Shown one piece after another: positions 16,101-22,100 of a stretch of DNA of 64,000 bases. How positions within the stretch are numbered: the first letter of the stretch is position 1; each line of letters starts with the position of its first letter. The stretch is from Octopus bimaculoides (taxonomy: Eukaryota), in NCBI RefSeq assembly GCF_001194135.2, contig NC_068988.1, positions 83,335,939 to 83,399,938 on the forward strand. Direction: 5' to 3'. Under the pieces are notes generated by a model. That model did not search any database. It was not told the origin of the DNA and saw nothing but the letters and a program-made list of their open reading frames with translations. A program made the translations under genes and the position numbers.

Positions 16101-19100
16101 CAATTTCTGGGGCGGGATGAGTCGATTACATCGACCCCAGTGCTCAATTGGCACTTATTGCATTAACCCTGAAAGGATGAAAGGTAAAGTTGATCTAAGC
16201 AGAATTTGAAACCAGAATGTAAAGACTGACGAAATGCTGCTAAGCATTTTGCTTTGCATGTTAATGATTCTGCCAGTTCGCTGCTTCAGTGTCATGTATG
16301 TTATTGTAACTTTATGTGTATCGAGTGGTTGGCGTTAGGAAGGGCATCCAGCTGTAGAAACTCTGCCAAATTAGATTGGAGCCTGGTGTTGCCATCCGGT
16401 TGCACCAGTCCTCAGTCAAATCGTCCAACCCATGCTAGCATGGAAAGCGGACGTTAAACGATGATGATGATGATGATTTTTACATTGACTGTGATTGCCT
16501 TTGAACTCATCTCTTTCATATTCTAGCAGATAAACATTAATTTTACTCTTTAAAACTTGATTGAATGGAGTTAATTGACATTATTTCTTGGAATGTGACA
16601 CAGATATTCAAAGACAAAATTTTTGGCAATGTGTTAGTGTTGAATGTACAATACTGCACAGCTGTATATGCTGATACTAGTACTAACTATCAGAACATAA
16701 AGCAGGAGTTGAACTTGTAATATGTCTATCAAGTATACTAAAGTATGGATGATTATTATTGCTCTGGAGGCAAGCTGGTAGAATTGTTAGCATGTAGGAC
16801 ATAATTGCTTAGTGGCATTTTGTTCATGTTTACAGTCTGAGTTCAGATTCTTCTGAGGTTGGCTTTGCTTTTCATCCTTCAGGGTTGATAAAATAAATAC
16901 CAGTTAAGCACTGGGTTGATACAAATGACTAGACTCTGCCCTCTAATTTTCAGGCTTTGTGTCTTTAGTAGAAAGGGTTTTTAGTGTTAGTTTTTAGAGT
17001 TAGTTTCTGTTATAGCCACCTGGCCCATTATATTGGTGTTCTTTATACTTATAACAATAAATTGTATTGAATTAAATTATCCTAAGTTTTTGTATCTGTC
17101 TTACATAGCCACCACTTTGTCAGTTATATTAGAGCTCATTAGGAGCATCATACATATAACATAAAATGGTTATTGAAACATTTACCAAAATATGACAAAT
17201 TCCCTTAACTTCATTTTCACTGTCTTCTGTAAATATTTTGATGGGAGTGGATTTTCAGTAGATCATACATTCCAATTTTCTTGTTCTAAGTAACTGAAAG
17301 TTTGCCCTCAGTCTCTGTAGTAATTCAGGAAACTAGACTTGTGTGTGGTGACTTTTTCAGATTTTTTTCAATGTAATCATTTTAATAGTTCAGTATTTTC
17401 TGTTGTTTTACTTTGTAGGTATTTAGAACCAACCTATAATTCAGGCTTCACTATGGAAGTTAAAGTTTGTTTCACAACGAATCCTCAAGATTTCTGGTGC
17501 CAGTCATCTGATTCCTATGGTCTTGATAGCTTAATGAATCAGTTGCAGATTTACCAAAGTGATGATATCATCCCAACTGCAGAGATCTGTGTAGGATTAC
17601 CATGCCTTGCCAAATACAGTGAAGATGGTGCTCTTTATCGAGCTGAGGTTGTCTCAGTCAATGTTGCCTCATCATCTGTGGAGGTGATTTTCTGTGATTA
17701 TGGTAATATAGAGTCAGTAATGATCACTGAGTTGATACCAATTCCAGAATGCTTCATGATTCTCCCAAAACAGGCTTTGCACTGTAGTTTAGCTGACGTA
17801 TCTCCAAAAGGTGAGAGTTACTGGGATGAAGATATGTGTACTGGTTTTGAAGAGATTGTTTCTGAAAAGGTGTTTACCATGTCAGTTCTGACTGAAAGGG
17901 CTAATAGTGTTTATATGATCAACTTAAAAGATGGTAATGACAAACGTCTTCAAGAAATTCTGATTGAGTGTGACATGGCCTCAGGCCTCACAGCACAAAT
18001 GTTTAGTGAATGTGGAGAAAGTAATTCAGATCTTCAGTCAGCAAATCATCCTGTAGCAGATAACAAATCACAAGATATTGATTCTCCAGACGATGATGAA
18101 TCACAAGATCTTCCTTCTCTTGATGCCGAGCCCTCAGAAACTGAAGCAGTTACAACTGTGTCCCCAGAAACTGAAGCAGTTACAACTGTGTCCCCAGAAA
18201 CTGAAGCAGTTACAACTGTGTCCCCAGAAACTGAAGCAGTTACAACTGTGTCCCCAGAAACTGAAACAGTTACAACTGTGTCCCCAGAAACTGAAGNNNN
18301 NNNNNNNNNNNNNNNNNNNNNNNNNNNNNNNNNNNNNNNNNNNNNNNNNNNNNNNNNNNNNNNNNNNNNNNNNNNNNNNNNNNNNNNNNNNNNNNNNNNN
18401 NNNNNNNNNNNNNNNNNNNNNNNNNNNNNNNNNNNNNNNNNNNNNNNNNNNNNNNNNNNNNNNNNNNNNNNNNNNNNNNNNNNNNNNNNNNNNNNNNNNN
18501 NNNNNNNNNNNNNNNNNNNNNNNNNNNNNNNNNNNNNNNNNNNNNNNNNNNNNNNNNNNNNNNNNNNNNNNNNNNNNNNNNNNNNNNNNNNNNNNNNNNN
18601 NNNNNNNNNNNNNNNNNNNNNNNNNNNNNNNNNNNNNNNNNNNNNNNNNNNNNNNNNNNNNNNNNNNNNNNNNNNNNNNNNNNNNNNNNNNNNNNNNNNN
18701 NNNNNNNNNNNNNNNNNNNNNNNNNNNNNNNNNNNNNNNNNNNNNNNNNNNNNNNNNNNNNNNNNNNNNNNNNNNNNNNNNNNNNNNNNNNNNNNNNNNN
18801 NNNNNNNNNNNNNNNNNNNNNNNNNNNNNNNNNNNNNNNNNNNNNNNNNNNNNNNNNNNNNNNNNNNNNNNNNNNNNNNNNNNNNNNNNNNNNNNNNNNN
18901 NNNNNNNNNNNNNNNNNNNNNNNNNNNNNNNNNNNNNNNNNNNNNNNNNNNNNNNNNNNNNNNNNNNNNNNNNNNNNNNNNNNNNNNNNNNNNNNNNNNN
19001 NNNNNNNNNNNNNNNNNNNNNNNNNNNNNNNNNNNNNNNNNNNNNNNNNNNNNNNNNNNNNNNNNNNNNNNNNNNNTACATCTATGTCCCGAGAAACTGA

Positions 19101-22100
19101 AGCAGTTACATCTATGTCCCCCAAAACTGAGGCAGTTACATCTATGTCCCCAGAAACTGAAGCAGTTACATCTATGTCCCCAGAAACTGAAGCAGTTACA
19201 TCCATGTCCCCAGAAACTGAAGCAGTTACATCCATGTCCCCAGAAACTGAAGCAGTTACATCCATGTCCCCAGAAACTGAAGCAGTTACAACTATTTCCC
19301 CCAAAACTGAGGCAGTTACATCTATGTCCCCAGAAATTGAAGCAGTTACATCTATGTCCCCCAAAACTGAAGCAGTTACATCTATGCCTCCAGAAACTGA
19401 AGCAGTCATGCCTATATCCCCTGAAGGTGAAGCAGTTATGTCTGTGACCCAAGAAACTGAATCAACCCTTCAGTGTACAGCTGTCAAAATGACAGAAAAT
19501 GAAGATTCTGATTTGGATGTCTACCAAGATACTTTTGATGACTTTGACATTCCAAACTCTTCAATTGATCCTGACAGATGTAATCTAGAGAATTCAAGCA
19601 CTGACAACAGTGAAAGCATGAAGAGTAATGACAACCCAGCATTCCAAGATGACACCACAATAACCAAACAATTCCCTGATGACCAAAATGTGGTCATTAC
19701 GGCCTCTGAAAACTGTCCAGCTGATCAAAACGAAAATGATCTCAATGAAAGAATCAGTTCAAAGTTTACTAAAGAGAACTTCCCAGATGTCAATACGACA
19801 GACAACAGTGATTTCAACAGTAACGTAATTAGTTCTTCCCAAATTCAAACCACTGCTTGCATTGATGAAGGTAAAACAGCAGAGTCTTCCACAATCCATC
19901 ATGCTGAAAACGACCTTCCTGCTGAAATTGAAACAAATCGTTCATTGGACGTGTTTGATTGCAATCCTAGTGACTGGGAAGAGTTAGATCAAGGTTTAAG
20001 TACCAGTCTCATGTCAAACTACTTGATAAAACCCAAAGACACTGTCTCTTGTTCTGATTCTAAAATAGAAAATACTTTGAATCCATTCGAGGATTGCCAG
20101 ACATTTAATCTGAAACCATCTTTAGGTGATATGGCGGGAGACTCTCTATTATCATTCCTTGATTGGAACATGGAGATCAGCAACCGTATCAAAGTTAGAT
20201 TACTGAATTTCATTGCACCAGATGACTTTTATGTGACACCTTCAGATGATTCTGATGACTATTTGCAATTGTCCATTGCAATAAAAGACTGTGTAGATAC
20301 ACTAGAGCCTTTCTCTGATCTGGATGATATTATTGGATTACCATGTCTTGCAGAAATTGAAAATTCATGGCAACGAGGAATTATTAAATCTAATGACAAT
20401 AATGCAATAAATGTGAGTCAATTTCATTTTTTTTCTTTTGTTTTACCTATGTATTTTTTTTAATTGAATGATTCCTTGATGTCACCAACCTCTGTGATTA
20501 AACTTTCATTGCCATTTTTCTAATAAATTGACTGCTTAAGTTTTGGTTAATTTTCAGTATATAATTAAGATATTAGAAACACATAGGTTGATATTAGTAA
20601 CTTTATATATTGGTATATATTATGCCCTTGTTGACGAATTGGAACCCAATGCTGGCTTTAGAAGAAGAGTGACCGAAGACTATTTCACTTGTGAGGATAC
20701 TCCTAAATGACCTATGAGTGGAGGCTCCCTATATTTTGAGGCTCTAGGTTTTAGCCTGATAAGGTAAATGCAGCACTATTGGGATTTCTTATTTGATGTT
20801 GTAATGAGACTTTGAAGAAGACCTAAACTCTTTAAGATGAGGCATCTGTAGGTAAGTGAGCTGATATTAAGGCTTAAAGTATGGTTCTTTCAATTGAATG
20901 ATCTCTGTCATGAACTACTTTATGTAGAGTACTGGGTGTGGCAAAAAATCCACCCTATATTACAGGTTGGAAAATGTTCCAACAGCAAACACATGATGTG
21001 CACTGTTCCAAACCATGGTAGAAACTGGAAAAAAAAAGTCAAACATTTGCTACACGAAGTCATCATTACTACCTGCCTAACTTCACTAATTAATATGCAT
21101 TGAAACAAGTGGTAGGTTTTTCTGCTGCATTCCATGTAGTTGTTGAAGGCTGAATACTTTCACATTACTCTCTTTCTCACACACAACCATTAGTCTTCCA
21201 TCACATCACTATATTTGCCCTTCATCACTCTAGAGCTGGTAGACAAATGAGCTGAGACAATACTGGATAGAGAAGACTCTTTATTCTTGCTGGGAGTTGG
21301 TCATCTTTAGTGATGGTGTCTTGATAAAATTGCAAACTCTATGAAGTGGTTGAAGAGTGGAACAGTATCTAGCTGTTGAATCCATGACAAAAAAAATGTA
21401 ATATATGCGTGAGACTTGGTTCCCACCTATTAAGGAGGACAGCAGGTTCAAACAATGACAAAAAAGTCTGTGGAGTCAGAAAAATTAAAATCAGTTTCAT
21501 TTGTTGCCATTCCTTGTTAATAAATCATCATCTAGCTTTGTGCTTTCAAAGACAGGTTGAATGAACATTACCTTATTTGAAGAACAGGTAAGGGTTAGTG
21601 ACAGAAGGGCATCTGGTTGTAAAACAAAGTCCAAAATATGTATTCATCCGACCCATGCTAGCATGGTAAAATGGATGTAAAGCTAACAACTATAAGTTCA
21701 GATATATTTTAATAAATTTTGAAATGTATTAATTGAAGCCCAGGCAATGTAGTTATTAGAAATCTAGTTATGAAGGAGCTAAATCTACTGGTATTGTACT
21801 ATTCTTCCATCAGTTTACCTAACTGTAAGAAATAGGTAACAAATCATCTGGGAGTGTAACTTTGATACTTGTCCAGAAAAATATCACATGTACTTTATAT
21901 TATAAACCAAGGATGGGCAACTTTTCCTAAACTGGGGGCCGCATCGTGCCATTTCCAAGTGGAAGAGGGCTGCATGATGAAATATTACTTGCCCACTTTA
22001 CACTGAATTTTTTGTAGTTCTTCTTAATTTTATTTGTCTTAGTATGAAATTAGTAACCTAGAAACACGTCGAGGACCGCAGGTTGCCCATGCATGTTATA

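Follow-up and report, generated by a model that had tools for sequence, protein, structure and literature searches.

Coding variable-number tandem repeats (VNTRs) are known from several genes, among them the Thr-Gly repeat of Drosophila period, the 54-nt repeat of human PER3, the 60-nt repeat of MUC1 and the repeats of yeast FLO1. Here we describe an array that resembles them in a TDRD6/Tudor-type gene of Octopus bimaculoides, on a stretch of 64,000 nucleotides (assembly GCF_001194135.2, contig NC_068988.1, positions 83,335,939 to 83,399,938 of the forward strand) that we call the window and in whose numbering positions are given. The array encodes the repeat (P-E-T-E-A-V-T-[T/S]-[V/M]-S)n. 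As in the known VNTRs, its unit, of 30 nt, is a multiple of three, near-identical units lie in blocks and the edges are decayed. Unit make-up, and probably unit number, also shift between close relatives whose flanks are nearly identical. It differs from them in that its variation has been seen between species and in that no phenotype is linked to its length. The octopus array is an ordinary, genus-level coding minisatellite, of a kind that is already known.

The protein that carries it is close to TDRD6 and Drosophila Tudor, multi-Tudor scaffolds of germ granules whose defining architecture is multiple Tudor domains without an accessory domain (PMC12147562). The likeness lies in its ten extended Tudor domains and the lack of any other Pfam domain. 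What sets the octopus protein apart is a 30-nt coding array, specific to its lineage, in the linker that joins Tudor 9 to Tudor 10; its assignment to TDRD6 and a role in germ granules are putative. In the literature searched we found no specific account of a cephalopod Tudor or TDRD6 protein, nor of coding repeats in germ-granule proteins. We consider it likely that the array is an in-frame 30-nt coding minisatellite within one exon of the O. bimaculoides gene, and a tolerated acidic spacer that turns over by units. An earlier reading of the window by a model that saw only its letters (hereafter the sequence-only reading) had made several claims on this array, and these are taken up below with the results that bear on them.

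Results

An in-frame array of 30-nt units

Tandem Repeats Finder calls a period-30 array at the locus, in two parts on either side of an assembly gap of 780 N. The left part (18135-18296) has 5.4 copies with 98% matches, the right part (19077-19461) 12.8 copies with 87% matches. For a 21-nt core of the unit, the window has 16 matches, all at this locus, against 0 expected from shuffles. Read in codon register, the left units are (S/P)ETEAVTTVS and the right units PETEAVTSMS, which agrees with the 30-nt unit and the two peptides given by the sequence-only reading. The same reading saw the array as polarized into two unit types that decay at the 3′ edge. The types do differ between left and right, but the separation is not clean, because a TT-type unit (PETEAVTTIS, 19270-19299) lies inside the right block. 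The decay is confirmed: the last three units drop to about 80%, 73% and 50% identity to the consensus, and the 3′ end of the right block holds the decayed units PETEAVMPIS and PEGEAVMSVT. Each unit has a net charge of −2, and the visible O. bimaculoides array one of −29. An origin of the array from a transposon or a satellite was rejected, since the unit is found nowhere else in the window and the 3′ end grades into unique coding sequence common to the three Octopus species compared here.

In the frame of Tudor 9 the left flank stops at the gap as '...GAA G', and in the frame that yields the linker and Tudor 10 the right flank opens with 'T ACA TCT ATG'. The missing letters are CAGT + 30k, and the gap must therefore measure 4+30k nt, that is, 1 mod 3, as the sequence-only reading had deduced from frame and repeat register. 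Taken literally, 780 N (0 mod 3) would put the two sides out of frame. The window contains six gaps and, since every one of them is a multiple of 10, their sizes are estimates. The exon that carries the array (17419-20412) has a visible part of 2214 nt (0 mod 3). Its splice boundaries are the same in four other species (loci L001 and L002, O. vulgaris L003 and O. sinensis L004), and the orthologous exon is 1 mod 3 in L001 (1552 nt), L002 (1540 nt) and O. vulgaris (2128 nt). The O. bimaculoides exon would reach this very phase with a gap of 1 mod 3. Furthermore, Tudor 10 is in frame in one phase only, the other two phases meeting stops at or just past the array. Between O. bimaculoides and O. 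vulgaris, omega is about 0.24 for the linker after the array (19450-19947) and about 0.13 for the part with the conserved motifs and Tudor 10, both from small counts. The coding sequence of Tudor 10 thus appears to be under purifying selection (omega 0.13-0.24), which makes sense only with a frame that is preserved through the array.

Two congeners offer the locus without N: O. vulgaris (OX597821.1, 44.9 kb) and O. sinensis (CM016866.1). In O. vulgaris, the 2128 nt of exon 19691-21818 form one uninterrupted open frame, which runs through 15 exact 30-nt units (20406-20855), and the array is annotated as coding sequence (CDS) in CAI9726720.1. The O. sinensis array (24812-25261; XP_029640178.1, LOC115215147) also has 15 units. 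Gene, exon, array site and the consensus unit CCAGAAACTGAAGCAGTTACATCTATGTCC are common to all three species, in which the 3′ boundary units (TSMP, MPIS/TPIS, PEGEAV..., MSVT, QETEST) are orthologous. The two congeners differ from O. bimaculoides in their unit number (15 against 18+k), in the lack of a TTVS block and in the presence of TSIP units and of a degenerate first unit, SETESNAYMS. Outside the array the exon has 1678 nt in O. vulgaris and the same number in O. bimaculoides, without an indel, and all of the length difference therefore sits in the array. All visible units of the three species (48/48) are exactly 30 nt long, without indels or stops, the old decayed units included. This exactness fits selection for frame with little selection on the exact sequence. 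The claim of an in-frame coding minisatellite inside an exon is thus borne out by the flank frames, the splice sites and the open frame of O. vulgaris, continuity across the gap being inferred, and the array would be translated as part of the O. bimaculoides protein.

The length of the array

The O. bimaculoides array consists of 536 visible nt plus 4 + 30k, that is, 18+k units. Eighteen is a strict minimum, because the visible ends differ in unit type (TTVS and TSMS) and cannot overlap. The sequence-only reading had proposed about 44 units, or 440 aa, which is sound arithmetic on the unverified estimate of 780 N; the sequence itself gives 18+k. The competing view of the size is that the array is near the 15-20 units of the congeners and that the 780 N are a scaffolding artefact across a tandem repeat, to which we give a probability somewhat short of one half. 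In its favour, the unit number is 15 in each of the congeners with a gapless locus, gap sizes are estimates that have been rounded, and tandem repeats are the worst case for such estimates. The way this assembly treats another gap (29973-29982, 10 N), described in the next paragraph, also points to imperfect gap handling. On the other hand, the O. vulgaris counterpart of a third gap (22394-22823, 430 N) measures about 346 nt, which shows that estimates can come out at the right order of magnitude, and the minimum of 18 already exceeds 15. It is roughly an even chance that the unit number of O. bimaculoides is far above that of its congeners.

The gap at 29973-29982 is flanked by two copies of a 173-nt sequence (29800-29972 and 29983-30155) that are 100% identical. 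These copies are almost certainly an unmerged contig overlap, an assembly artefact and not a real duplication.

Age and turnover of the array

O. vulgaris and O. sinensis split about 2.5 million years (My) ago, and O. bimaculoides split from them about 34 My ago (PMC10700109). Since the three species have the array at the same site and with the same 3′ boundary units, it predates the O. bimaculoides split and is at least about 34 My old. This does not support the recent expansion claimed for the insert as a whole; only the 5′ TTVS block looks recent, being specific to O. bimaculoides and nearly perfect. Two more distant orthologs lack the array, which agrees with the sequence-only reading. In L001 and L002 (from ENA ERZ21867824 and Logan ERR12921340) the same exon is present, at 35-40% identity, with an acidic linker of about 234 aa and no 30-nt array. 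These two loci are probably from non-octopod cephalopods, because their identity in the big exon is 48%, against 23-31% for bivalves and gastropods. The linker that holds the array, from Tudor 9 to Tudor 10, would have been acidic ancestrally.

Outside the array, the alignment of O. vulgaris with O. sinensis shows 7 differences in 1677 sites (flanks 99.5% identical). Their arrays differ in several units, with four TSIP units in the first against one in the second and with K, I, TSLS and TQ variants only in O. sinensis. The unit make-up of the array therefore turns over far faster than its flanks. Identical variants come in runs (TTVS x5, a TCC variant x3, TSIP x4, a GCC variant x3), which is a signature of local duplication. 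Given this rapid turnover, length polymorphism of the array is plausible. The three species have 15, 15 and at least 18 units of differing make-up, and the older O. bimaculoides 'isoforms' in RefSeq, which vary by whole 10-aa units, are only suggestive.

The GAAACTGAATCAA of the degenerate first unit in O. vulgaris and O. sinensis (SETESNAYMS) reappears in the 3′ flank (QETEST). Its presence at both edges suggests a local seed, and the array probably grew from such a 'SETES' sequence that still marks its edges. Later evolution would have proceeded by gain, loss and conversion of whole units, through replication slippage or unequal exchange, at a pace far exceeding that of point substitution.

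A tolerated spacer or a regulated one

In our reading, the array most likely acts only as an extra acidic, probably flexible spacer that is tolerated and, as we infer, close to neutral. Several observations weigh against this account or against parts of it. The O. sinensis assembly has a 1-nt deletion that shifts the frame of the array, and RefSeq derives from it a truncated protein and a separate downstream gene. The present RefSeq annotation of O. bimaculoides likewise splits the gene, at the gap, across which continuity and frame are taken from the congeners and not seen. As to near-neutrality, the flanking linker shows an omega below 1 and has acquired no indels over 34 My, and the presence of exactly 15 units in both O. 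vulgaris and O. sinensis is a possible hint of length constraint. Finally, AlphaFold2 models the array as beta strands at moderate confidence.

The sequence-only reading saw in the array a phosphorylatable, disordered spacer that could tune the spacing or the condensate behaviour of a germ-granule scaffold. Spelled out, this proposal is that the length of the array and its phosphorylation at S-P and CK2 sites tune the spacing of Tudor domains or germ-granule condensates, and that its expansion is adaptive. Its retention in three species over some 34 My or more, the charge of its units, the presence of S-P in most of them and some purifying selection on the neighbouring linker agree with this proposal. 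The sequence-only reading held that every unit carries an S-P site and CK2 motifs. There is indeed one S-P per canonical unit, but it is lost in TSIP and TSMP units and is not a conserved feature of the unit: it is present in 8/15 units in O. vulgaris (lost in 7) and in 11/15 in O. sinensis. No full CDK consensus (S/T-P-x-K/R) occurs in the visible array, where the MAPK-type P-x-S/T-P has a single match. The CK2 claim fails, since S/T-x-x-D/E occurs 0 times in a canonical unit of either type. Across species there are 0-3 matches per whole array, all of them in degenerate units; the only one in O. bimaculoides is SETE in the degenerate first unit. Among the distinct unit variants pooled over the three species we counted 9 synonymous and 14 non-synonymous changes (p = 0.15 against the neutral expectation), numbers that are too few to show selection and that give no significant synonymous excess. 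Distant orthologs do without the array, and the literature searched holds no expression, phosphorylation or localization data on this protein. We regard an adaptive, regulated spacer as unlikely, and a role of the array in tuning condensates as pure speculation.

A more specific version of this proposal is less likely still. It holds that O. bimaculoides underwent a roughly three-fold expansion (about 44 units against 15) with a new TTVS type, that the array is length-polymorphic, and that its length measurably alters the spacing between Tudor 9 and Tudor 10, and hence granule assembly or fertility, by way of S-P phosphorylation or of a beta-rich, semi-rigid conformation.

The array in public records

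To the sequence-only reading no such insert was known in Tud/TDRD6 proteins. This does not hold: the array is already in public protein records (CAI9726720.1, XP_014774882.1 and others), and comparable acidic arrays exist in unrelated TDRD6-like proteins. An exhaustive search of the array peptide against 1.84 billion cluster representatives returned one strong match, the 2617-aa 'Tudor domain-containing protein' of O. vulgaris (P0132, CAI9726720.1; E = 6.6e-52, 79% identity), whose cluster includes RefSeq products of O. bimaculoides and O. sinensis. In this representative search the PETEAVT unit is confined to the Octopus cluster, the 150 other matches being unrelated repeats with a period of 10 residues and without Tudor domains. 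No paper describing the PETEAVT array was found in the literature searched. The array is thus in public records yet undescribed, and the gene is mis-annotated in two genomes.

Word-indexed protein searches, of the exon and of the array with its flanks, gave neither a close relative nor a comparable repeat and had wrongly suggested that the array is unique, a view that the exhaustive representative search overturned by finding the Octopus cluster. The word-indexed search returned no Octopus protein despite entries that are 100% identical (O. bimaculoides) and 97-98% identical (O. vulgaris, Tudor exons) to exons of the window. Its negatives are therefore not readable as absence.

In O. bimaculoides, the present RefSeq annotation divides one gene in two at the N gap. 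XP_014774883.2 ('tudor domain-containing 6, partial', 2008 aa), which is 100% identical to the exons of the window (357/357 and 293/293 residues), terminates exactly at the left edge of the gap (...TVSPETE), and XP_052826182.1 ('uncharacterized LOC128246987') begins at the right edge (MSRETEAVTSMS...). The older models XP_014774882.1 to XP_014774886.1 (2574-2634 aa) span the gap. In O. sinensis, a single T is absent 26 nt upstream of the array (CCTTCTCTT > CCTCTCTT, L004:24786-24812, compared with 18107-18133 of the window and L003 20379-20405), which makes the exon 2130 nt long (0 mod 3) and puts the array out of frame. As a consequence, the RefSeq models 'tudor domain-containing 6-like' X1-X5 read the array in the +1 frame (QKLKQLHLCP...) to a stop, and the remainder of the gene is the separate locus LOC115215147. 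Starting with the first unit, the correct frame contains no stop. Since it is intact downstream, the deletion is probably an assembly error, although it could be real.

These split annotations, the O. sinensis deletion, the RefSeq 'isoforms' and an acceptor-like TGTCCCCAG in each unit could also mean that the array is not in the protein, either because the mRNA loses it or because a real break in the gene yields a 9-Tudor protein and a separate product downstream. We hold this to be very unlikely. The O. bimaculoides split falls exactly on the N gap and is therefore a consequence of it for the annotation, the assembly itself having broken on the array. The O. vulgaris open frame runs through the array, the O. 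sinensis frame is free of stops from the array on, and Tudor 10 downstream is under apparent purifying selection. Moreover, the orthologous exon is uninterrupted in five species, and inspection of the unit sequence found no GT...AG pair that could excise 30k nt in register. We thus keep the reading of an in-frame array within one exon. The array is the reason for the mis-annotation of TDRD6 in two of the three Octopus reference genomes, and users of these models, as germline markers or in surveys of the piRNA pathway in cephalopods, are better served by the O. vulgaris model. It is also a ready hypervariable coding marker, which differs between species about 2.5 My apart.

Predicted conformation

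By charge and hydropathy the array units lie on the boundary between order and disorder, and the flanking linker clearly on the disordered side. AlphaFold2, run without alignment (models mbec8ac35c0be and mdd83f2b3b6ae, covering 17420-18295 and 19078-20412), gives the array a pLDDT of 59-81 and models each unit as a beta strand of 6 residues and a turn of 4. The acidic linker scores 20-36 and the genuine Tudor 9 only 22-44. Since a real Tudor domain scores below the repeat, AlphaFold2 confidence is uncalibrated here, and we rejected it as uninformative as a proxy for disorder. AlphaFold2 is documented to hallucinate a beta-solenoid fold for perfect repeats (PMC11795689), and we are nearly certain that the beta model of the array is such an artefact. 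Foldseek found no significant match for the array model (best E = 0.83), the top matches being beta-solenoids. That the array folds as a regular beta-solenoid or beta-meander with one strand per unit, a rigid rod-like module, is highly improbable: the strands and scores of both array halves, the boundary position of the units, unlike that of the flanking linker, and the kind of the best Foldseek matches speak for it, and the lower scores of Tudor 9 in the same runs, the E value of those matches (about 0.8) and the uncompensated charge of −2 per 10 residues with a proline in each unit, which disfavour a stable stack, speak against it. Disorder of the array is plausible.

The repeat that scores above a genuine Tudor domain is in itself a clean natural example of the beta-solenoid bias described in PMC11795689.

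Comparable arrays in other Tudor proteins

Near-perfect tandem peptide repeats were found in 4 of 131 homologs, three times between Tudor domains: in the katydid Anabrus simplex 'tudor domain-containing 6-like' (P0131, residues 1191-1514; 61 aa x 5.3, net charge −112), in P0053 (residues 647-693) and in P0107 (residues 1309-1339). In P0061, an ENA protein, the array (residues 1233-1504; 19/38-aa unit, 272 aa, net charge −70) follows the last Tudor domain detected in the fragment. The arrays of P0131 and P0061 are, like that of Octopus, near-perfect and strongly acidic tandem repeats. They lie in different linkers, and their unit sequences and lengths are unrelated to the octopus unit, which argues for independent origins of the three.

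Multi-Tudor scaffolds hence tolerate large acidic arrays in inter-Tudor linkers that arose independently (Octopus, katydid, source of P0061). This suggests that such linkers retain their acidity under weak constraint on length and exact sequence, which would give multi-Tudor scaffolds a design rule that can be tested. It is not a new kind of system.

The gene and its surroundings

The features of the gene, which is TDRD6-like, lies on the + strand and has its protein start inside the window, are collected in Table 1. Its ten Tudor domains were placed by a profile built from the window's own domains, the tenth being split by an intron. By Pfam and this profile, the array does lie where the sequence-only reading had put it, in the Tudor 9-10 linker of a protein of Tud/TDRD6 type. 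The stretch of about 230 aa rich in D, E, S, T and N that had been reported to follow it is also borne out.

Table 1. Features of the TDRD6-like gene in the window
Feature	Position	Strand	Basis and remarks
First coding exon, protein start	1090..1152	+	residues 1-21 of XP_014774883.2 (P0286) and O. vulgaris P0132 map at 100% identity
Tudor domains 1-8	2805..10897	+	Pfam PF00567 and profile from the window's own Tudor domains
Tudor 1 (split)	2805-3014 + 5566-5697	+	PF00567 / own profile
Tudor 2-5	6172-6510; 6727-7059; 7351-7689; 7978-8322	+	PF00567 / own profile
Tudor 6 (weak), 7, 8	8701-9015; 9908-10246; 10556-10897	+	PF00567 / own profile
Exon with Tudor 9, array-bearing linker and N-terminal part of Tudor 10	17419..20412	+	acceptor ttgtag/GTATTTAG, donor AAT/gtgagt
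Tudor 9	17456..17794	+	PF00567 E = 8.9e-25; own profile E = 2.3e-41
Acidic linker before the array, 54 aa, S/D-rich	17972..18133	+	composition; no indels against O. vulgaris
Array, left block, 5 units + 13 nt, SETEAVTTVS / PETEAVTTVS type	18134..18296	+	type not in O. vulgaris or O. sinensis
Assembly gap, 780 N (estimate)	18297..19076	.	true length must be 4+30k nt for frame and register
Array, right block, 13 nt + 12 units, PETEAVTSMS type with variants	19077..19449	+	variants R, K, I, TTIS, TSMP
Acidic linker after the array, 231 aa, D/S/N/T/E-rich, net charge −37	19450..20142	+	equivalent of about 234 aa in distant orthologs
Conserved linker motifs FDxNxx[DE]WE..., KIENxL...Q[TS]F[ND]L	19942..20112	+	invariant columns against orthologs at 35-40% identity
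Tudor 10, N-terminal two thirds	20179..20412	+	PF00567, profile positions 4-84
Tudor 10, C-terminal third, next exon	23676..23798	+	PF00567 and own profile; orthologous exon L001 12458-12670

A Pfam scan of the large exons returned Tudor-type families only, with no MYND, RING, LOTUS, KH or helicase domain, and the Pfam list of the full O. vulgaris protein is also Tudor-type only. Matches of the Tudor domains in the PDB are to the extended Tudor (eTudor) domains of TDRD1, Drosophila Tudor and TDRKH. Of the homologs that bear a name, those that match best are TDRD6 of vertebrates, 'maternal protein tudor-like' of insects and 'tudor domain-containing 6-like' of molluscs, the first two being the best outside the cephalopods. 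Matches named TDRD1 and TDRD15 are listed as well, and the RefSeq product name in O. bimaculoides is 'tudor domain-containing 6'. We therefore class the gene as putatively of the TDRD6/Tudor type, as against TDRD1/4/15, an assignment by architecture, best named matches and RefSeq name.

The conserved linker motifs downstream of the array may extend Tudor 10 on its N-terminal side or serve for docking. Pfam found no significant match in miscellaneous open reading frames elsewhere in the window. A dispersed element of about 155 nt occurs twice (16323-16477 and 29669-29823), in inverted orientation and 99% complementary, in introns or intergenic stretches. Copies at 82-84% are found in O. vulgaris (L003 24804-24953 and 42309-42454), and the element looks like a young short interspersed repeat.

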